Translations under genes and position numbers: made by a program
Shown: positions 10,601-57,680 of the stretch, piece by piece
Layout of the letters: every line of letters starts with the position of its first letter
Position numbering within the stretch: the first letter of the stretch is position 1
The notes under the pieces: model-generated
The model's database searches: none
Seen by the model: the letters and a program-made list of their open reading frames with translations, nothing else
Told to the model about the DNA's origin: nothing
Source of the DNA: Gracilinanus agilis
Lineage: Eukaryota
Assembly: GCF_016433145.1 (NCBI RefSeq)
Contig: NC_058130.1
Coordinates: forward strand, 708,317,536 to 708,381,535
Length of the DNA stretch: 64,000 bases
Reading direction: 5' to 3'

Positions 10601-13600
10601 TATTTCCTTACCACCCAGGAATACCTCCCAGGATCTATCTCCACATCCCAGAGGGCTAAAGGGAACACTTACCTTGCTTATTTCCACCCCCAGGACCATG
10701 CAGCAGAGGATTCAGAAGAAGTTGTAGAGATGCAGGGGGTCCTAAGCTACTGAGGATCTGAAGAATGTTTGGCTCAGGCAGCAGCCCCTTCCCCCTGTTC
10801 AGAGCCTTAAGAGACAAACCAAAGAAACCAATCATAGTTCAGCACTGCCACATAAAGATTAACCCAGGGCCTGGCAAGAGGGTAACATGAAGTAAGGTAT
10901 CCTAAATCCCAGACACCTAGGCCAGGAAACATGGGTTGCTTAATGTCCTATGTCCAAGGAGGCCCCACTCACCGTGGCCTGGGCAGCAATGAGGGCAGCT
11001 AGCATACTCCGGCCTGGAGGGCCTGGGGCACAGAAAGACACTCGGACAGGATTTCCAGCCAGGACCATCCCATCGGCCTGCTGCTGGGCTTCTTCAGCCA
11101 TCTGTGATGTCTCATACTCCAACACTGCAAAGCCCTTCAGCTGTCCATCCTGTCCATATGCGAGCTGTGAGGCAAAAAGACAGGAAATAAACTGGGGAGG
11201 CCTATCACTACCCACCTCCCAGTTTAGAGATAGGCAAGTCAAGAAATCTATGGTCAGGTCATCATGATATAGTAGAAAAACCAAGGACTTTGGAGCCAGA
11301 AAACCCAAATTCAAATTATGGCTCTGGTAAGTCATTCTCTGTCTCTAGGCCAATTTCCTCCTCTATGAAATGAAATGGACTGTAAGGTTCTTCCCATGCC
11401 CCTATTAATAAAGGTGTAACACTGACAATGAGCCAGGCAAGCTTAGGCCTGTTTACCTGGCAGAAGGTGGGAGAATGTACAGAAGAAAGAGCCTGTCGAA
11501 GTTCATCCACATCACTGTAGCCCTGGGGTAGGTGGTCAACACAGAGGCATCGTGAATGCAACAGTGCTGGAGTCAGCTGGCTGGCATCTGTCCAGTGCAC
11601 ATACAGTGTCCGGGGGCCCAGTGGTTTGCCCAGTAGGTCTGACTTGGCTCTAGCTGCTGAATCCTTCTTCATATACTCTACAAAGCCATAGCCCTTGGAG
11701 TGACCACTGCGCTCACTGTACACCAGGAAGCAGCGCTCCAGATTGCCAAAGGGTCTCACTAGCTCCTCAAACTGCTGCTGTGTGTAGCTTGGGGGCAAGT
11801 TGGCAATACAAAGCAGGGCATCTGTGGGCTGCAGCTGCACTGACAGCTCCTTATCCCTCAGGTGGCTCTGGTGAAATGTGCGGATCGCTGATTCTGCTTG
11901 TTCCCCATTCAGCAAAGTCACAAAAGCTGGGATGAAGGGAATCACAGAGGGAAAAAATGAATACAACTAATAAAACAAGAGCGCCCCCAGAATCTCATCC
12001 TCTTGCCCTACAGCTTCCAGACCACTTTTCTTGGAGGGCATGTCTTTCCTAATCTCAATTTCCCAAGCCAGAGCACCCACCACTCACCAGTCCCCTTGTA
12101 CTTGTCCACAAAACAGTACTTGAGCTCATAGTCACTGAGCAGGTCATGTACTTCCTGTAGAAATAAACAGGAGATCAAGAAAAGTCACCTAGAGGCTAAA
12201 AAAGTAGGGCATTGAGGGGTTGCGGGGTAAATGGCTTGAGAGAAGAAACAAACTCCAGGATTCTGACCAGCTCCTTGATGCCAACTGCAACACTGTTCTT
12301 CACAGGAAAGCTGTGGGGACAAAGATGACGGGGCTGCCTATGCCAGATGAGATATCATGTTCCCCACAGGGTTAAAGTAGTGGACAGAAGACTTAGGACT
12401 CCAGAAATTCGAACACCAGGCCAGAAGCAGAATTTGTCCTAAAACCAAGTAGCCTACAGATCTGTTCCTTTCCCACAGAGCTCTTTCTCAATGGTTTAAA
12501 ACCTTCCTATTTTAACACACTCTGGCAGTAAGACTAGAGACCTAGAATGTACCAGCAGCAGAAAAGAAGGTACTAGTGTAGCCATCTAATCCAATTTCAT
12601 ATCTAACAGATTCACAACTGTCAGTCTCTACTTGGACATTTTTTAAAAAATCCTTGCTTTTGTCCTAGTAACAACTCTAGGACAAAAGGGCAAAGGCTAG
12701 GCAATTGGAGTTAAATGACTTGCCCAGGGTCACCGTCACAGGTAGAAATATTGGAAGCCACATTTGAACTCCAGACTCGTTATGCCTGGTTCTCTATCCA
12801 CTGTGCCACCTGGCTGCCCTCCATCCACGTTTCTTTACAAAGAGATGTTTGTTCCTTTCTTGCAAATAAATGCCTTCCACATTTCCCTCTTCACCAGGTT
12901 CAAAGGATACTAGAAGCTTAAAAAAGAGTTGGGTTCCACTCTCCTAGCATGCCCACAGTAAATAAGGGAAGTACTGAATCCAGGGAATTGCACCAAGGGA
13001 TAGCAGAGTCATGACATTAAGGTTTACACAAGTATTCACACTAAAAACCCCATTAAGATGTTTGTTTTGCTAAGGATGAGGAATTATCTAGAGAAACTCG
13101 GCTATCCATCTTAGCGAGCCACCCACTTTTCAATGCACAAATATTCCCGGACCAGCCCCAGGAGTCAAGCCTGGCTGCCTCCTTTCCTTCCTTCCTCCAC
13201 CTCTCAGCCTGGAAGACATAAGAAAGGGCCTAGAGCCCGCAAGCAAGCCAGGAGCCTGGTAGCTTTGGGTCAGACCAGGCTGGCCCCAAGACTCTGGGGC
13301 CCCACTTCGGTGGCGCCGACTTCCAGAGACCTCCCCCAACCCTAAACTCGCCAGACGAAACACCATCCGGTCCCAGAAGAGCGCCCGCGGCCCCGCCCCG
13401 CGATGTCAATCACTCCATCTCGTACAAACTGGTTGGTTGCTCCAAGGATGCCACGCCCCCTCGATCTTTCCCTGCGTTCCCCTCCCCCCACCCAGCAGAG
13501 CACACTCCCTCGGCGTACCCCGCCCCGAACTCCCACGTTGGTATCTCCCACTCCCCACAGCCCCCTGGCGGAAGATGTCCTGCCGCCAGCGCTCTAGTCC

Positions 13601-14850: not shown

Positions 14851-17800
14851 GGAAAATCAGGAGGTCAGTGCTAGGGGCTGGGAAGACCTTGACTAGCCAA
14901 TTTTCCTTGAATAGCCAAAGAAAAGAGTCAAAGGTGTTTATTCAATTAAATTGGAGATGTATAAAGTGCTTTAATTTAAATGTAGCCTCAGACACTCATT
15001 AGTTTCATGACCCTGTCCCAGTCACTTAACCTCCATATTCCTTAATCAACTGGAGAAGGAAATAGCAAATTAATGGTAGCTGTACAAACAAAAAAAACCC
15101 CAAACCCTATGGAATTAGGATTGACTGAACAACAACAAAGTGTTTAAATCTTGAAGCATGAGTTAGCTGCTATTTTATTTACTTTGTAATTTTTGTTTTC
15201 ATTAATAGTCATTCCCAGGTCTGACCATGTTACTTCAAAAACCTTCAGTGGGAGCAGCTAGGTGGTTCAGTAGATAGAACCTCAGGCCTAGAAATGGGAG
15301 GTCCTAGATTCAAATGTGGATTCAAACATTTCTAACTGTGTGACTGGGCTAATTAACCTCAGTTGCCTAGCCCTTCTCTTCTGCCTTGGAACTGATTTTT
15401 TTTTAAACCCTTAACTTCTGTGTATTGACTTATAGGTGGAAGATTGGTAAGGGTAGGCAATGGGGGTCAAGTGACTTGCCCAGAGTCACACAGCTGGGAA
15501 GTGTCTGAGGCCGGATCTGAACCTAGGACCTCCCGTCTCTAGGCCTGGCTCTCAATCCACTGAGCTACCCAGCTGCCCTGGAACTGATTTTTGATTCTAA
15601 GAAAGGAAAGGGTTTAAAAAAGGAACAACAAACTTCAGTGACCATTATATGTAAGGATAAAATACAAACTTCTGAGACATGGTGCAACCTCTAACACCAC
15701 CAGCCATGTGACCATAGAGGCAAATTACTTCTCTGCACCTCAATTTTCTCATCTGTAAAACAGATTTAATAGATACCTAAAGTAGTTAACTTAACAAGGT
15801 TGTTGTGAAGCAACTCGAGATTTTAAAAATTACATATTTATATAGTGATTACTATGTGTTAGGCACTGTGCCAAGCACTTTATAATTATCACAACCCTGG
15901 GAGGTAGGTGCTGCTCTTATTCCTATTTTTCAGATGAAGAAACTGAGGCAAATAGAGATTCAATGACTTGATTCACTGCTAGTGAGTGTCTGAGGCTGGA
16001 TTTGAGCTAAGGTTTTTCTGGCTCTATTCAGGACATCATCCATGAATTTTTTTTTTAATTCTTCTGCCTTAGAATTTATAAGAAGTATCAATTCAAAGGT
16101 AGCAGAGAGGTAAGGGTTAGGCAGTTAGGGTTAGTTGACTTGCCCAATGTCATACAGCTAGGAAGTAGGTAAAGTCAAATTTGAACCCAGGACCTCTTCA
16201 GGTCTGCTCTCTAATCCACTAAATCACCTAATTGCCCCTACCACCTATAAAAGTTTATGAATCTTAGGTATTTTTAACTTCCACAGGCCAACTCCAACCT
16301 ATGTCCAGCCTTCTATAATCTCCTTCCCCTTTACATAGCTTTTTTCAACCAAAGCTATTGCCTATACTGTCTGTCTCCCTTGCAATACCCATCTTCCCAC
16401 ATGGCCTGTGTTTAAATCTGGCTTCAGATCGCTTTCTAACTGTGTGACAATGGGCAAGTCAGCTAGCCCAATTGCCTTGTCCTTGCCATTCTTCTATCTT
16501 AAAATTGATCCTAAGAAGGGAAGAGTTTAAAAAAAATAAGGAAAAGAAAAGAAAGATATATGTATCATCTCATCCAAATAGTACCTTTGAAGGCAGCAGG
16601 TATGGTGCCTTTCATTCTTTATATCTTCAGGGCCACTATAGGACTCTGAATTTAGTAGTACTTAATATGTATTTCTTGAATTGTCTGGGCAGCACAAGAA
16701 ATTGGTGGTCAAGAGGCTGTACTTACATAGGACTAGAAGCTGAAGGCTCTTGTTCCTCCATAATTTCTCTCCCATCAGTTCCAGGACAGCTTGGCAGGTA
16801 AACCAGTACCCATCATATTCCTCAGTGGCTGTCAGGGAGAGCTGGGCAATCTCACCAGGTGAAAAGAGGGTGCCATTTATCAATACCCTGGCCCCTACCA
16901 GTGCCTCACAGGTCACATTCACTAAGGTCCCTTCAGGTACAGTGGGCTGGCTGATCACCAGGTTAGGTAGAGGGAAACCTGAGGAAAAGGATAAGGGACC
17001 ATTTTGGTATCCAGAGAGAGCTGAGCAGGGCCTTGACTTTGTCTTTGCCCTTGCCCTACCACCTCCCTCTGTCTCAGCCCCATCAGGTTGTGACTCTCCT
17101 TACTGTAAATGGTCAGATTTCCATGGACTTCTCGGTTTTGATTCCCTAGAGTCACGTTGCAAGTCAGCTCCCACTGGCCCTCTCTCTCTCCCTCTGCAAT
17201 GGCTGCTATGGCTGTGGCCCTGAGCATGTCCTGGCCCCGGGTGACTGTTAGACTCAGGTTTCTCCCTCCCAGGGACAGATAGATTTGGGCATCCTCCACT
17301 GGAAATAGCTTGTCAATCTCGCAGCTTACAGTGGTCTCCTTGCCGATCTCCAGAAGTTTAGGGGCTGTGAGGTGAGGGGGATCCTGGCCTAGGACTGAGA
17401 GGACAGGAAGAATTAGAAGAGAGAAGTTCAGACAGGTGGGAATAGAATGTGAAGGGTACTGGTACCTGTCCCCCTTTTGCCATCCCTCACCAAATGTGTG
17501 GAGCTCCACAGGGATCGAACTGTTCTGATAGAGGACTAAACCTTGTGGTCCCAGGTCCAGCTTCAGCTCTGCTCTGCAAGAGAAGTTGGCTTTGTGGTTC
17601 TCTCTACTGGCTGTGGCTGTGACTGTGATCTCTGCTGCCTTTTCTGGGCCTTGTTCAGAGACTGACTGCCTGCTCAGTTCCTGAGATCCTTGAAACAGTG
17701 CCACTGTCAGGTTTTGTCTGGGTCTCCCACCCAACACTTGGCATCGAAGGCTGAAATTCTGGCCGACAGAGATCCATGGATCCAGAGGTTCAAGCGCCAC

Positions 17801-20800
17801 ATATTCTGGTGGCTCTGGAAAGAGGAAAGAGAACCCCAAATGGACTGTGGGAGTAGAGGATTGCCTAGTTTCCCACTACCTCCTCCTAGTGGATAGGTTC
17901 AGCTTTGGACAGATTACAGTGAAACTTTTTTTTTAAACCCTTACCTTCCACCTTAGAATCAATTCTATCTATTGGTTCCTAGGCAGTGGTAAGGTATAGG
18001 CCAGTGATGACAAACCTACGACACACGTGTCAGTGCTGACATGTGTAGCCATTTTCAATGACATGTGGCCACATGCCGAGGATGAAACATTTGATGTAGT
18101 GTAGACACTGTGCACTATAGATGACAATTCTACCAATATTAATTTACCTATTTTGGTTTACTAAATATAGTTGCATATCATAATTATACATTTTTGTTAT
18201 TTAAACTATAAATATCATGTAATTATGTGTTTTTTTCTTCTTGAAATGACACACCACCTGAGTTATGCTCGTTTTTTTGGCGAATTTTGACACACCAAGC
18301 TCAAAAGGTTGCCCATCTCTGGTATAGGCAGTGGGGGTTAAGTGACTTGCCCAGGGTCACACAGCTAGCAAACATCTGAGACCAGATTGAACCTAGGACC
18401 TCTCATCTCTAGGCTTAGCTCTCAATCCACTATGCTACCCAGCTGCCCTCTGAAACTCTTGATTTAAGAAGACCTTCAAATACCCTTCATGACCTTGCCT
18501 CCTTCTACCTCTCCAGGCTTCCTTTACTTTGCTCTCCTGCTAAGTGCTTATTTGATCTAGTGACACTGGTCTCCTGGCTGTTCAAGGAACAAGACGCTCT
18601 ATATCTAAGCTCTGGGCATTTTCTCTGGTTTTTCCATGCCTAGAAAGAACTCCCTCCTACATTTTGACTACTGACCTCCCTGGCTTCCTTTAAGTCTTCT
18701 CTTAATTCTAGTGCTTTCCCATTGTTAATTATTTCTTATTTATCCTGTCTATCCTATCTTGTTTTGTATAGATTTCCATGTTGTTCTTTCTATTCAATTA
18801 TAAACTTCTCGAGGGCAAGGACTGTCTTTTGCCCCATTTTGTATCACCAGCTCTTAGCACAGTGCCTGGCACATATAGGCACTTGATAAATGTTGACTGA
18901 TTGTCTGAGTCTAGTTTTTAAACACCTCAACATTCATTTTAAAATCTTTTATTAGAACTAATAAAGGCTTTTTCTGGTTAAGTTGATCAAACTTTTTAAA
19001 ACCTAGCTTTTTAACTCAGTAAAAGGTTTAAATTAACACCATTTTTTGTTAAACCCTGAATATACTTTCCTAGGTGTTCTGTAATCAACAGATTTTCCTA
19101 AGTGCTGTGTGAAGAAGAGTAAATGTTCTTTCTCAAGGTCATCATGCTTATTGAAAATTGTTGGCTGGCCAAGAAGGAGGCAATAACTTGGTCAGGAGGT
19201 TATAAAACCCTAGATTTACAACCAGAACAGACCTTAGAGGTAGACCATCTTGTCCAACCCTTCATTCTACAGATGAGGAAACTGAATATGTACTAATTTT
19301 CATATAGCTGCTTCTGACCTCTCAATTTCATCTTGTCAGTCACAGGGCACATGTCCTGTAGTCATTTGTGTTATACAACCTTTCTAGATCCCACTGACAG
19401 ACCTTAGGACAGAAAGCCCACCCCTTCAAACACCTGCCAAAACAGTGGGTCATAAACTGGCAGAACACTAGGACTTTCCTGTCAGACCCGGACAGATGTA
19501 TAACTTGAACATATCCTAAGGGCATTCATTCCTGAGAACACCCCCACCCCACCCCCAGAAATAGCCAGTGAAGTCGAAGTCAACTTGTCCTCTACGCCCC
19601 CTCCTTCCCCAAACCTGTAAGACCCAATATCAACCCCCCCACCCTCAGGTGGGACTGCTTTGCCAATTCTCTTGGCAACAGGCTCCCCTTTACTACCTTT
19701 TCCCTCCTACCCTATGGGACTCTTAGCTATCTATTGGAATGGAGCTCCCCATCACCGCACCTCTCCTTCACACACCCCTTTCTTCCATTAAAGATTTGCT
19801 ATATTACCTTACTCTCCTTGTCTCTTGGGTTGAACCCCCATCAGTCAGACTGACCCCTACATGTCATGGTTCACTGGAGGCACATGATCTCTGCTCCACA
19901 TGCCCCAGTCATTCCCACTCCAGAACCCTATCGAACCCACAGACTTCATGGCACATTCCCTCACCTGTCCCACAGGCCATGGCAGTCTTGCCTGAGAAGG
20001 GGACATTGCTGGCTCAAATAGTCTGAGGCAGCTAGACATAACCACTGGTCCTGGAGTCAAGAAGATCTGGGTTCAAGTTGTGAGATAACTTTAATTTCTC
20101 TGACTCACTTTTTATTATTTAATAATGATTATAAATTAAGATACAATCTCCAGATCATTTAATCAACAAAATCTAGCCTCAGATAGCTGGGCACATCACT
20201 TAACCTCTGCCTTAGTTTCCTCAACTAAAATGGGGGTCATTGTACCATCTGTCTCCCAGGGTTTTTATGAAGATTAAATGAGATATTTGTAAAGCATTTA
20301 ACATAGTGCCTGGCACCCAAAGGGCACTCAATGAATGCTTGTTTCCTTGCTAGTCATCTTATGATGAGAGAGGATGACCAGTTCCCCCAGGCCTTAATAG
20401 GGTCTCTTGGGTTAGGAGGAAAGGAGACCTCGAGGTTAGGGGTGCTAGAATGATCCCAGAGATAATAATCCCAGGAGTGGTTGCCATAATGCCAGTGAAA
20501 GCTATTGAAAGACTTCGAGGTCAGGCACAGGGAGGCCATAGGAAATACATTTGCCTCTGCCCAGGAAATTTGCTCCTTATATTGATAAACCTATAGCAAA
20601 GCTCTAGTTGTTTGGTCCTAGGTATAGTTTTGGGGCCATAGTCACTAATGGTGTGCCACCATCTCTCCCTGCCCCCCCACACCCAGATACTTACGAATCA
20701 CAGTGATAGTGGTTCTGTGGACCATCTGAGGTTCCCCAAAGCAGTTGGCAAAGCAGAGGAGCTGGGTATCCTGGATCACGTTTCTCAGTAGGAATTCTTT

Positions 20801-24581: not shown

Positions 24582-25444
24582 TGTAGGGTTCCAGGTTAAA
24601 ACAAATCATGAAAGTATTAAAGATGCATTCAGTAGGTGACTCTTATGAGCAATAATATGCTCGTGTACCAGACTTCTGGATATATTTCTAATATTTCACA
24701 TAATTGATTTCTGGATCCTTGCATTGAATCAGGGCTCAAATCTTGTGGTACTCTGATCCCTTCCCACACCTGCAGTCAGAAGGTCAAATGAACCTCTGAG
24801 CTGGGCACTGGCTACTACACTGTCTTAGTCTTCATCTCGTTTATCTTGTTGTTTACCAAGCTGATGCTAAATTCTCTACCATGTCACATGTTTAATCAAC
24901 TATCTCCCTCTTCCCCATTCCTCAAAACTTCATTAAAAATGTTTTCACCTGTAGTTCGCTCTCTCATACCATCAGAAGAGCAATTGACAGGCTGGACGCT
25001 ATGCCGATGAATCCTGTGTCTCTTCGCCTTTTTTCTTGCCTTATATCCTCACTTCCTTAATCTTTTTTTTTTTTTTTAATTTTAAACCCTTAATTTCTGT
25101 GTGTTGACTTATAGGTGGAAGAGTGGTAAGGTTAGGCAATGGGGGTCAAGTGACTTGCCCAGGGTCACACAGCTGGGAAGTGTCTGAGGCCGGATTTGAA
25201 CCTAGGACCTCCTCTCTCTAGGCTTGGCTCTCAATCCACTGAGCTACCCAGCTGCCCCACTTCCTTAATCTTTAAACCCTTCCACCTAAATTCCCTCAGT
25301 CCCCAGTTTCTCTTTCAGGTGGTCAACCCATGTAAGAATATCTTGTTACAATATCTTGTAATGTAGCTGGTCAGCTACATTAAGAGTCAGCTATTGAATG
25401 CATCTTTAATACTTTCATGATTTGTTTATACCTGGAACCCTACA
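24582..25444. mobile_element. Unclassified TG...CA element with 64-bp terminal inverted repeats and a 5-bp TSD
   Basis: Left arm 24582-24645 and right arm 25381-25444 match at 60 of 64 positions. TSD TTCCC at 24577-24581 and 25445-25449. About 655 bp after removing the nested SINE. Confidence 0.85.
25066..25257 (-). mobile_element. Young SINE1_Mdo-like SINE
   Basis: 16-bp TSD CACTTCCTTAATCTTT at 25050-25065 and 25258-25273. Confidence 0.88.
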
Positions 25445-26741: not shown

Positions 26742-26952
26742 NNNNNNNNNNNNNNNNNNNNNNNNNNNNNNNNNNNNNNNNNNNNNNNNNNNNNNNNNNN
26801 NNNNNNNNNNNNNNNNNNNNNNNNNNNNNNNNNNNNNNNNNNNNNNNNNNNNNNNNNNNNNNNNNNNNNNNNNNNNNNNNNNNNNNNNNNNNNNNNNNNN
26901 NNNNNNNNNNNNNNNNNNNNNNNNNNNNNNNNNNNNNNNNNNNNNNNNNNNN
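26742..26952. other. Assembly gap (211 N)
   Basis: Run of N bases. Confidence 1.
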
Positions 26953-29973: not shown

Positions 29974-30172
29974 TTTTAATGTTTTATTTTTTTATTTTTA
30001 ACTCTTAACTTCTGTGTATTGACTTATAGGTGGAAGAATGGTAAGGGTAGGCAATGGGGGTCAAATGACTTGCCCAGGGTCACACAGCTGGGAAGTGTCT
30101 GAGGCCGGATTTGAACCTAGGACCTTCCGTCTCTAGGCCTGGCTCTCAATCCACTGAGCTACCCAGCTGCCC
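29974..30172 (-). mobile_element. Young SINE1_Mdo-like SINE
   Basis: TSD CTACTAATGGTTTTT at 29959-29973 and 30173-30187. Confidence 0.88.
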
Positions 30173-30284
30173 CTACTAATGGTTTTTATCTTTAATAATA
30201 GAGGTCTTCTAGCAACAATTAGGTAGGAATTGGGCAGCCATTTGTAGGTGATATTGTAGAGGAAATGAATTTTCGTTTTCATTT

Positions 30285-31359: not shown

Positions 31360-31788
31360 AGACATTTATGGTTGTACATGGGCCTACAGGGAGACTTGTA
31401 AATCCAAGAGGCCTCTCCAAAGGACTATATTCACCAAGGAACCAACTAGCACTAGATGGAAATGTGGAAATAAGGACAGAGGCCTGCAGGCTGTTGCATA
31501 AGACCTCTGAAGAGATGCCCAACAACAGAAAGAGGTAAAGGAAGGAGTAAACCTTTTTTTTAATAATAAAATAAAAAAGGAAGGAGTAAACCTAGACATT
31601 TATGGTTGTACATGGGCCTACAGGGAGACTTGTAAATCCAAGAGGCCTCTCCAAGGGACTATATTCACCAAGGAACCAACTAGCACTAGATGGAAATGTG
31701 GAAATAGGAAAAGAGGCCTGCAGGCTGTTGCACAAGACCTCTGAAGAGATGCCCAACAACAGAAAGAGGTAAAGGAAGGAGTAAACCT
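31360..31788. repeat. Tandem duplication of a 195-bp unit
   Basis: Copies at 31360-31554 and 31594-31788 differ at only a few positions and are separated by a 39-bp spacer. Confidence 0.92.
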
Positions 31789-35534: not shown

Positions 35535-37195
35535 TGTTGAGGGGGTGAAGGGAGGGTAGGTAGAAGGAAGGATGGATGGGAGAAAGGAGAGAGGAAGGGA
35601 AAGGAAGGTAGCAGGGGGAAATTGACCAGAGCCCTTTGGGGCTCAAATAAAAGATCAGAGAGTAGCTTTAGGGTTTAGAATAGCTAGGTCTTATTTAAAT
35701 TAGAAAGGGGAAGGTCTAGGAAAAACTAGGATGTAGATAGAAAGGGTAAAAGGCACCGAGAAAGATCAGAGTAGATAGCGTCAGTCAGCCTCCGGGCTCA
35801 GAGAGTAGACAGACTCCAGGGTAGAGAGATGGAAAAGATGCCACACTCTCTATTTTATACTTTTTCTGACACTTCCCACAAAGGAAGTGGGAGTTGTCGG
35901 GGAAAGTTGTAGCAGGGATCCCTGGGAGATGTAGTCTTCCAGGGCTTACAACAATTCCAAATGACACATTCCCCCCTGTGATCCTTTGGGAGACCAATCT
36001 CCCCAATGGATCATATAACAAACATAAATAAATTTACAATTACAATAAAATAAAGGGTATATACATCAATACAAGGGGAGAATGATAACAGTTTTTTTAC
36101 AATATAAAGAAATCACATACTTGGCGCTTCTTTTACAAAAAAATCAGGGGGCAGACCCCTTTTCTTCACAACAATACATGTACATATAAAACAAATACAT
36201 TTAAGCAAAACAGATGAATTTAACAAAACAAATGAATTTTAAACCAGCAAATGAATTTAAAACCCCCCAAAGTTCAAAATTTTGCTCCGGTTGCTCTTTT
36301 AGGCTCCTGGATCAGCATGCATTTTCCATGTGGTCTCCACAGGCATCTCCATTTGGATTCCAGGAGGCAGTAAACTTTTCCTAAAATAAACTCTCCATAT
36401 GAAATAAAAACACATTCCCCCCTGAGGAGGATAGAAAGAAACAATGAAATCACAGAGGGGTATATGGCTGAGGCAGGAGGCATGTGAATCACTGCCAATC
36501 AAATTCATCAGAAAAATTAGCACAAAAAGGCCAAATAACTAGTGGATGAAAAATTCTAAACATCCAATCCTAAATTTTTTATGGAAAAGTTCTAAATAAG
36601 AAAAAAAAGAAAAAACACACTAGGTCTTTGAATAATGTCCAATCAAAGTAATCCATGTCCAATATCATGCATTTACCCACTTAACAGCCAGGACCACAGT
36701 CAACAACCATAGTAAGAAGATTAGGAAAAAGGACTAGATTTGTATTTATTGGTCTGATATTATGTCATGTCTTCTTTTCTTCTTTCGTCGTTTCTTCTCA
36801 GGGAAATAATATGGAGACAGAACAGCCAATTGTTAGGTACTTGATATAAATTTCACAAGGAGTGTAGTTCCAGGAGTCCTACATCTTAACGTATGTTAAG
36901 CCTCACAACCTCAATTCTCACACTAGGTTCAAGTCCTGTTTATTGGCATAGAAGTCTCAGCAATCCTAGTAGGATTGGTTTCTCTTTTTGACCTGTGTGC
37001 TGGTTTGCTAATCAATGATATTGATGCCACTGCAATGATAATAACTGGCATTAGCAATTGATATTGGGGACAATAATCACTAGAGACTTTAATATCTCCA
37101 AGGAGAGCACATTGGACTGTACCATTAGAAGAATTGCACAGACCCTTGGAGGACATCTCGGTGCTACAGTGGGCATTGAATCTGGAAAACCTGAT
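35535..37195 (-). mobile_element. ERV 3' remnant: LTR (35535-35968), PPT and env-like internal sequence
   Basis: Minus-strand TGT start at 35968 is preceded by the purine tract CAGGGGGGAA; TATAAAA near 35855; ...CAACA end at 35535. Decayed internal frames show N-glycosylation sequons, Cys residues, a furin-like RSKR (36994-36983) and a TM-like FFLIFLLWLLTVVLAV (~36733-36684). Confidence 0.65.
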
Positions 37196-37419
37196 TTCAC
37201 ATCTAACCTTAGATACTTTCTAGCTAGGTGACTGCACAAATCACCTAGCCTCTGTCTGCCAAGGACTGGGAATACAACTACAAAATTGATAGATAGTCCC
37301 TATTTTCAAGGACCTTACAATCCATTGAGGGGAAAGCAACACACAAAAGGAAACTGAACAGGGAAAATGGCAGGGAGAGATGGAAGTACTTAATGTGGGG
37401 TTATGATGGAGAAGTGCAA

Positions 37420-39400
37420 ACAAGTACAACTGGTGAGAAGACTTGGCTATCCTAGGCTCCCTTCTTAAATGAAAGTTCTCACTGTCAATGGGGACAGAGA
37501 GTGTGAGTTCCAGGGCTGAAATGATCTTGCAGGATGAAGAGGTTCCTGGGAAAAGTTCAAAGGTGTGCAACCGGATGGAATGTAAAAGGGACTGTGTCCT
37601 CTTTACTACTTCATTTCCATGCAGAATGGGATCAAACAACAAAATTTCTACATAACATGGTTCCACCAAGTTCATGATCAAAGGCCATGTAGCTATGGGA
37701 TGAGCCATTATCTCATCTACAAACTACCCTGGGTCTTCAAAGTTGTTCCTGGCTCCTCAGGGACCTCCAAGGTAGATGGGCTAATCACAAACCAAAGCAT
37801 GGGCTCCACACCAGGATCTGCTAGTGACTTGCTCTCTTGGCCTGGAAACTATCATGATTCATAGCCTTCAACTTCCTTCGCCTAAAACAAAGGAAGAAAA
37901 GGGCTGTCGCCTACATTTTTGGGCCACATAGCCAGGCTTAAAGCCTCTCCCATTTCAACACTGACTCTCTCCCTCACCAGAATGCTGACAGGCAGGAAGA
38001 AGTCTGTCAAAGAGAAGGACTAGATTCTGATTGTCTAGTGTCTTTTCAATTACCCTAGTACTGACTAAGCAACCAATCAAAAAACTTCTTCATCATGTGG
38101 TAAATGGACCAAATCAGATGAAGAATCAGTGTTTGTGTCTCAGAGGCATCCTGTGCATGCTCCCGAGGACAGAGCCCATTGGCCATTCTTCTGATATATT
38201 TGGATTACTCATGTATCAAGAGCATTAAAGAACTGTCAAGCATCTGACCTGGAAAAGAAGGACAAATTCATGGAGGGCATTAGAGGGCCAAATTATAGGC
38301 TTGCCGTGGGCTCGACGTCTTTCAGAGCCTGATATCATATGGCAAATTTGTTGACAAAAACTTGAAAAGCTTTATGGGGTCCATAAGAACCAAATCAACC
38401 ATATGTTGCATTTATTCACTGGCTTTACATTCTAGCATAGTGGAGAAAAGTTTTCTGCTTTTGTAATTCATATTTAGTCTATCTAGATCTGATCAAAATG
38501 GGTAGTTAGTTGTAAGTGCTGAAGAAGAGGATGTCATCCAGCTGAACTGAGTGAGCAGTGAGGCTTCATACCTAGCAGTATAATATGAAGACAGGCAACT
38601 GAGAATTTTTACAAAACCTGCCAGATTTGGAAGTATGAGCAGAATCATTGTGGGTAGTAAGGTCCCCAGTGATCGCTGCCTCTATATCATTTGCCAGTGC
38701 CAGTTATTATGTCTGCAGTGGCATCAGTATCGTTGATTAGTGCACCACTGTCGATTTAACCAGTTGATATGTCATCAATACAGTTGATAATGAATTAACA
38801 TCAATGATCTTTTTTTTTTTTTTTTTTTAAACCCTTGTACTTTGGTGTATTGTCTCATAGGTGGAAGATTGGTAAGGGTGGGCAATGGGGGTCAAGTGAC
38901 TTGCCCAGGGTCACACAGCTGGGAAGTGGCTGAGGCCGGATTTGAACCTAGGACCTCCTGTCTCTAGGCCTGACTCTCACTCCACTGAGCTACCCAGCTG
39001 CCCCAATGATCTTTTGCAAAGTAAAATCAGTATTTCAGAAATTAGAAATTTCAGCAAATATTTGAAATGATGCAATACCTAAAGTACAAAAACTGCAGTG
39101 GAGCACACCCTCCCTTCTGCCACCTGAATCCATGGAGTGAGAAGGCTCAAACTTAAAATCAGTGCATCATTGCCAGTGGATAGAGATGCATCCTTACTTG
39201 CAGGATACAGCATCTAAGCTGCTGAAATACACAGATGCAAAGTTAAAAGTTTTCAAAGAATCCATGAAAAGATAGAACAGTAAACAAAGTCTCTCTGTGA
39301 AGATGAAAGACCAAGAGAACCAAATCCCAACAGTCCAATTCAAGACTACCACTTTCTATCATAAATATAGACTAGATGGCTATGAATTTGTCTAGGGCAC
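37420..39400 (+). pseudogene. Decayed PNMA-family (Ty3/Gypsy gag-derived) gene or retroelement gag fossil
   Basis: Colinear motif blocks: RFLGK (37540), LFLAPQG (37743), LCMLPR (38151), WITHVSRALKNCQASDLEKKDKFMEGIRGP (38201-38290), [16 protein letters not shown] (38328-38378), F*HSGEKFSAFVI (to 38468), QLN*VSSEA (38539), RQLRI (38593) and a mutated CCHC knuckle (39357-39398). Many stops and frameshifts; interrupted by a SINE. Confidence 0.8.
38814..39003 (-). mobile_element. Young SINE1_Mdo-like SINE inside the PNMA-like fossil
   Basis: TSD CAATGATCTTTT at 38802-38813 and 39004-39015. Confidence 0.88.
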
Positions 39401-39954: not shown

Positions 39955-41000
39955 TTAAAGGATATGAAAAAAATGCTCCAAATCGCTAATAGTTGAAAAG
40001 TACAAATTGAAGCAATTAAGGTTCTACTTCATACTTATCAGATTGGCAAAGATAACAAATTGGCAGAGATAATACCATATTGACAAAGAAAATTATGTAT
40101 GTTGGAGGGGTTGTAGGAAAACAGACACATTAATGAACTATTGGTGAAGCTTCAGAATTTGTAAAATTGGTTCAGTCATTTTGGAAAACAATTTGGAAAT
40201 ATGCCCCCCAAAAGTCACCAAACTGTGTATGCCCTTTGCTTCAAAGTATTATTACTAGGACTATATCTCAAAAGGGGCATAAGAGGAAAAGCACCCATAA
40301 TTACAAAAATATTCATAGTAGTTTTTTTGTGGTGGAAAAGAAAACTGAAAATTGGAAACTGAGGGGATGCCAATCAATTAGGGATTGGATGAACAGGTTA
40401 TGGTATATGAAGGTGATAGAATACTATTGTGCTGTAAGAAATGATGAAGGAGATGGTTTTGAAAAAACCTTGGAAGTAAGCAGAACCAGGAGGACAATTT
40501 ATACAATAACAACATTGAAAAGACAAACAACTTTAAAAGAATTATAAGCCCTGATCAATGCAATGACCAATCGTGATTCCAGAGAATCAATAAGGAAGTT
40601 ACCCGTTTGCCTCAGTTTTATCAACTGTAAAATGGGGTTAATATTAGCACCTACCGCGCCCCCCAGGTCATTGTGAGAATAAAATGAGATAATATTTGTA
40701 AGTCACTTAGTATAGTGCCTGGCACATAATAGGCACTATGTAAATGCTAGTTATTATTATCATTATTACTACTGTTACTTTTATTACTATTATTATGTTA
40801 CCCACCTCCTGTTAGAGATGGACTCAAGATGCGGAATGAGAGGTCTTGAAGGAATAATGAAGGAACTTGCTTTGCTTGAGTGTACATATTTTTACAAAGG
40901 GTTTGTTTTTTTCCCAATGGATAGGGGAAAATGAAAGAAGATAAAAGAATCAAAGCAAGATGACCATGTTTTGCTGAGCTTGATGTGCACAAAATATTGA
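39955..41000 (+). mobile_element. Old L1 ORF2 3' end and 3'UTR fragments with an internal MIR/L2 piece
   Basis: ORF 40167-40547 reads ..FWKTIWKY..WKLRGCQSIRDWMNRLWYMKVIEYYCAVRND.., typical of the L1 ORF2 C-terminus. Confidence 0.75.

Positions 41001-48096: not shown

Positions 48097-57680
<9,584 letters not shown>

Follow-up and report, generated by a model that had tools for sequence, protein, structure and literature searches.

PNMA-type sequences in marsupials and the locus studied here

Dead relatives of the PNMA genes are already on record in marsupials. Using the gag of Gypsy12_DR as a query in opossum and tammar, Iwasaki et al. (2013) listed 'PNMA pseudo' loci, 12 in the former and 19 in the latter (PMC3789554, Table 1); these loci, named mdPNMA pseudo1-12 and mePNMA pseudo1-19, passed a TBLASTN threshold of E<1e-9 (PMC3789554). 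In addition, the coding exon of PNMA2 has been equated with the gag of MamGyp-int (bioRxiv 10.1101/2023.02.09.527862). This ancient and dispersed mammalian repeat, a Ty3/Gypsy internal consensus, has its own long terminal repeat (LTR) families in Repbase, MamGypLTR1 and MamGypLTR2 (PMC5753468). Here we analyzed 64,000 nt from Gracilinanus agilis (contig NC_058130.1, positions 708,317,536 to 708,381,535 of the forward strand; hereafter the window), in which a preliminary description had placed the fossil of a PNMA-family gene. We find that a PNMA-type capsid relic at ~38151-38650 on the + strand is very probably real. It is likely to be a dead, neutrally decaying and non-functional capsid (CA) remnant of a PNMA-type Ty3/Gypsy gag.

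The relic shares with the 'PNMA pseudo' loci a similarity to PNMA/Gypsy12_DR gag combined with an open reading frame (ORF) of less than 100 aa in a marsupial genome, although it may be more decayed than they are and fall below the TBLASTN threshold applied to them. It is possibly one of the loci listed by Iwasaki et al. A second comparison is offered by PNMA-MS2, which lies in an olfactory receptor cluster on opossum chromosome 1, likewise retains a PNMA-type capsid alone, with neither pol nor LTRs, and was judged to be a pseudogene. PNMA-MS2 keeps a 112-aa ORF between olfactory receptor genes, whereas the corresponding length in the relic is 45 aa and its neighbors are ICAM3-like and TYK2-like. 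Because both the ORF length and the neighboring genes differ, the relic is a locus other than PNMA-MS2.

Based on Pfam family PF14893, the relic appears to fall into the same capsid family as PNMA-MS1 (also M-PNMA, in an intron of LAMA3) and the eutherian PNMA1-like genes. These genes are intact, expressed and conserved and have an N-terminal RRM-like domain, whereas the relic is broken and that domain is undetectable in it. PNMA2, another member of the group, assembles capsids. Fragments of MamGyp-int are dispersed, very old and usually found without LTRs or pol nearby. At the relic, neither LTRs nor pol were detected. Since dead PNMA-type gag relics have already been catalogued in marsupials (PMC3789554), and a PNMA-type gag is part of MamGyp-int, the novelty first ascribed to the locus was overstated.

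Structure of the relic

Translation of the window recovered all of the peptides on which the fossil had originally been proposed, each at the coordinates given for it. Three capsid blocks can be followed along the + strand. Block 1 (38201-38299, frame A) lies inside a 45-aa stop-free piece (38195-38329) and contains the peptide WITHVSRALK...IRGP, in full WITHVSRALKNCQASDLEKKDKFMEGIRGP, at 38201-38290. It is the one part of the relic to which a search tool gave direct support. Block 2 is in frame B and consists of PDIIWQIC (38328-38351), a TGA codon (38352-38354) and QKLEKLYG (38355-38378). Block 3, also in frame B, reads F(stop)HSGEKFSAFVIHI(stop) at 38430-38477, with HSGEKFSAFVIHI itself at 38436-38474 and an in-frame TAG on either side of it (38433-38435 and 38475-38477). 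The stop-free piece of block 3 is thus 13 aa long, which is below the length that profile tools need. Upstream of block 1, the hexapeptide LCMLPR (38151-38168, + strand, frame B) is a weak, putative decayed motif of the capsid start.

Reading along these blocks involves two changes of frame, one between 38168 and 38201 and one, a +1 change from frame A to frame B, between 38299 and 38328. Within 38151-38477, a distance of ~110 codons, there are therefore at least three in-frame stops (at 38352, 38433 and 38475) and two frameshifts. No intact gag-like ORF is present at the relic. The longest stop-free piece with PNMA homology is the 45-aa piece. In-frame stops make up ~2.7% of the ~110 codons, compared with ~4.7% (3 of 64 codons) in random sequence. 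As a rough estimate, this density points to a long period of neutral decay and shows no discernible phase under selection.

Profile and string evidence for PNMA homology

The 45-aa piece matches the Pfam family PNMA (PF14893) with E=2.9e-4 and 20.8 bits, residues 3-35 of the piece aligning to positions 17-49 of the 161-position profile. The gathering cut-off of this family is 25 bits. The profile evidence is confined to single stop-free pieces, and coverage of PF14893 is limited to positions 17-49 because the stops chop the sequence into short pieces. Among ~85 stop-free pieces scanned between 35.3 and 46 kb, PNMA was the only retroelement family matched; the top noise matches in this set had E-values of 0.015-0.085 and were to unrelated families. 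The stop-free pieces of block 2 had no Pfam match of their own.

We also scored the PNMA1 strings quoted in the preliminary description at every position of the six-frame translation of the whole 64 kb. The string for block 1 scored 82 at 38201 (z=9.9), and the next site in the window scored 29. The string for block 2 reached its window-wide maximum at the place originally cited, 42.3 codons after block 1 (27, with a runner-up of 26), as did the string for block 3, 34 codons after block 2 (32, with a runner-up of 26). The three maxima are on one strand, are colinear and fall within 280 nt. The margins for blocks 2 and 3 are small, and the weight of this comparison comes from the co-location of the three maxima. 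The relic is presumably colinear with PNMA1 across the CA domain, as judged from the quoted PNMA1 strings. Taken together, the Pfam match and the colinear strings support the proposal that the + strand carries a fossil of PNMA type (Ty3/Gypsy gag capsid).

Two further arguments that had been offered for the homology carry less. LCMLPR was said to be five single transitions away from LRVFSG; the arithmetic is true, but the argument is weak, as 29 of 127,508 window positions share this property. The chance of one such site in the expected 60 nt is p ~0.014, and LCMLPR is absent from the top BLOSUM matches. That most stops are one substitution away from the expected residue has no evidential weight, since the same holds for nearly any stop codon.

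Other searches of the relic returned no additional relatives. When three pieces were searched against PDB with phmmer, no chain of PNMA2, Arc or Ty3 was retrieved. NCBIfam gave no match for the relic, as expected of a prokaryote-oriented library, and Rfam and tRNA scans of the relic region found nothing. A protein homologue search with the 45-aa piece, limited by its length and by shared words, gave no candidate. The sole phmmer match of this piece among 1.84 billion representatives was an 803-aa repetitive protein without a Pfam domain (P0001), which was matched via four copies of an internal repeat, FEALKDCAASALTRLR..., and was judged spurious.

Extent of the relic

The fossil had been drawn from 37420 to 39400. 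Of this interval, ~38151-38650 is supported, while 37420-38150 and 38650-39400 are unsupported. If 38201 is taken as profile position 17, extrapolation over all 161 positions would place the PNMA domain at ~38153 to ~38633, and the location of LCMLPR at 38151 fits the extrapolated domain start (profile position 1). At the other end, the frame C peptide YEDRQLRIFTKPARFGSM... (38584-38650, + strand) may represent the C-terminal end of the capsid, which would require a further frameshift. This segment may resemble the end of the PNMA1 capsid domain; it had no Pfam or PDB match.

Upstream, the proposed N-terminal strings RFLGK (37540-37554) and LFLAPQG (37743-37763) are both present on the + strand. 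No stop-free piece of at least 20 aa in 37420-38150 matches PNMA or PNMA_N, however, so the N-terminal blocks could not be upheld. The N-terminal RRM-like domain PNMA_N (PF20846), sought upstream of the capsid, had no match in any stop-free piece of 37250-38244. Downstream, 38650-39400 consists of an inverted-repeat arm and a short interspersed element (SINE) and is not capsid.

Opposite the claimed N-terminal region, the - strand holds a 155-aa ORF that starts with ATG (37241-37708), the longest ORF seen listed between ~18 and 54 kb. Neither a Pfam match nor a homologue was found for it, and it extends into a MIR-like SINE fragment at 37170-37311. This is probably a chance ORF.

Origin of the relic

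The reading that we favor, and consider likely, is that of a dead capsid remnant of a PNMA-type Ty3/Gypsy gag. The source would be an LTR retrotransposon from a lineage that publications refer to as Gypsy12_DR-like, Barthez or MamGyp-int. The element itself, or else a copy or fragment, would have ended up between the ICAM3-like gene and the TYK2-like gene. Deletion, truncation or later insertions would then have removed pol, the LTRs and probably the N-terminal part of gag, and the remaining capsid part would have gathered stops, frameshifts and a neighboring SINE. The remnant would have no present-day function. Both the origin from a retrotransposon rather than from a host gene and the order of the losses are what we infer from the state of the locus. 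Gag capsid homology of the PNMA/Barthez type was found for the CA part alone. The surrounding DNA, a mosaic of repeats with SINE copies, an inverted repeat and a 1.47-kb segment, was counted in favor of this reading.

Several points weigh against it. The PNMA score of 20.8 bits is under the 25-bit cut-off and comes from a single 33-residue stretch, and the PNMA1 strings behind blocks 2 and 3 were confirmed by no tool or paper. No protease, reverse transcriptase, RNase H or integrase family was matched (Pfam, E<=0.1) in the 49 + strand pieces of at least 35 aa between 39.2 and 46 kb; pol families were also missing from the pieces of 38584-39392 and of the inverted-repeat arm on the far side of the relic (arm B, below), and shorter or more decayed remnants would escape such a search. 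Self-comparison of 30-47 kb returned one inverted pair besides SINE copies but no direct LTR pair with a target-site duplication around the relic, and the window contains no second capsid copy. As far as searches with short pieces can detect, the earlier statement that neither pol nor LTRs are present is thus borne out. The locus accordingly lacks the positive hallmarks of a retrotransposon insertion, and a host-gene origin is possible. On the other hand, the lack of pol and LTRs is the usual fate of very old retrotransposon fragments and is therefore no sign of domestication.

We weighed three other explanations for the locus. If the relic were a pseudogene copy of the domesticated marsupial gene PNMA-MS1, produced by segmental duplication or as a LINE-1-mediated retrocopy, its gag-only content without pol and LTRs would be accounted for, and marsupials do have one intact PNMA gene, PNMA-MS1 (PMC3789554, PMC3670739). 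However, neither a poly-A tail nor a target-site duplication was recognised around the relic, and the N-terminal domain is undetectable in it, so that we regard such a copy as unlikely. Chance resemblance, with no real feature at the locus, could appeal to the Pfam score under the curated threshold, to an E-value that approaches 1 when rescaled to a blind six-frame scan of all pieces of the 64 kb, and to blocks 2 and 3 beating their window runners-up by just 1 and 6 score units. Against this, PNMA was the family predicted beforehand, so that the 45-aa piece has a per-family p of ~1e-8; the noise matches of the ~85 control pieces are at least 50-fold weaker; and three maxima, each in a target of ~60 positions out of ~128,000, have a joint probability of ~1e-7 if the strings are genuine. 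We consider a chance origin to be distinctly improbable.

The preliminary description had itself preferred an independently domesticated single-exon PNMA gene ('PNMA-MS3') that was once functional, later died and is maybe intact in other marsupials. The presence of gag alone, as a single copy within the window and with pol and LTRs undetected, would suit such a history, as would the fact that the capsid blocks are still recognizable. Yet we found no sign specific to domestication, and past purifying selection leaves no signal that could be read from a single sequence. The comparison of stop frequencies given above, rough as it is, offers little indication that the sequence was under selection for long, and there is no intact N-terminal domain. 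Two systematic surveys, moreover, find just one intact marsupial PNMA gene (PMC3670739, PMC11011659), and most of the known cases are dead gag relics. Domestication followed by death is thus very unlikely here. The more specific claim, that the relic is the leftover of a second marsupial PNMA domestication at ICAM3-TYK2 whose gene is intact and under selection in another marsupial lineage, appears more improbable still.

Inverted repeat and interrupting segments around the relic

A ~400-nt inverted repeat, detected by blastn, brackets the capsid remnant, with arms that are 76-83% identical. Arm A (38645-38809 and 39005-39240, + strand) begins where the capsid homology ends and is interrupted by a SINE. 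Arm B (37104-37001 and 35535-35270, - strand) is split by a 1.47-kb segment. Neither arm has a protein-family match in any frame. They could belong to a repeat family of their own, or they could have arisen when the 3' continuation of the relic was duplicated locally in inverted orientation. No capsid-like sequence adjoins arm B; a second capsid copy beside this arm, or the - strand ORF at 37241-37708 as that copy, was considered and rejected, as there was no DNA or protein similarity, Pfam match or homologue.

The segment that interrupts arm B (35536-37000) is flanked by an imperfect 11-nt duplication (GGTGCACTAAT / GGTTTGCTAAT) and holds a 19-nt tandem repeat at 36188-36260. Either it is an insertion with a target-site duplication or, conversely, arm A has undergone a deletion at a microhomology.

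The SINE inside arm A (38810-39004, - strand) is of the marsupial tRNA-derived type, with a poly-T at 38810-38828 and a target-site duplication, aatgatc, at 38803-38809 and 39005-39011. Copies that are 90-92% identical occur in the window at ~25050-25260, 29980-30175 and 53535-53730. This level of identity points to a fairly young SINE subfamily. The SINE is younger than arm A, which it splits.

Two retroviral candidates in the arms were also rejected. A possible retropepsin motif in arm A (IVD(stop)CTTVDLTS, compared with LVDSGATxNFIS) had no Pfam match, and arm B has the same stop. A possible gammaretroviral env in arm B was raised by a 96-aa piece (36932-37219, - strand) that matched TLV_coat with E=0.062; the RSKRE motif of this piece is inside the 1.47-kb segment, and arm A is without RSKRE. 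The spacing of DYC...RSKRE in the piece resembles what we take to be the arrangement in the surface subunit of murine leukaemia virus, a gammaretrovirus, and was judged to be chance.

Elsewhere in the window, a 136-aa stop-free piece at 40137-40544 (+ strand) ends in ...IEYYCAVRNDE... and matched no Pfam family; this ending may correspond to the C-terminal tail of mammalian LINE-1 ORF2. A 195-nt unit is present twice in tandem at 31360-31788 (97% identical, 234 nt from start to start), and 211 consecutive N, either an assembly gap or masked sequence, occupy 26742-26952.

Gene neighborhood

Exons identified with Pfam on both sides of the relic bear out its location between ICAM3-like and TYK2-like genes, as initially described. 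All are on the - strand. An exon with ICAM-1/3/5 D2-domain and immunoglobulin-like homology lies at 16955-17836, and an RRM_1 exon at 11316-11963 would be RAVER1-like by synteny. On the other side are TYK2-like exons, with JAK-type kinase exons at 49518-51780 and a JAK-type FERM (FERM_F2) and PH-like exon at 54524-55039. The order of the exons fits the RAVER1-ICAM3-TYK2 arrangement of the human genome. The relic is intergenic, with at least 7 kb to the nearest detected TYK2-like exon.

Implications for PNMA evolution in marsupials

As found, the locus is one more dead PNMA-type gag fragment, and at most it would serve as a marker for dating Gypsy12_DR/MamGyp-like activity. If, instead, an intact orthologue existed in another marsupial, marsupials would gain a second capsid-forming PNMA gene, in a family thought to have one marsupial member. 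Such a gene would provide a test case for a single domestication of PNMA, in the therian ancestor, versus repeated domestication (PMC3670739 versus PMC3789554 and PMC11011659).

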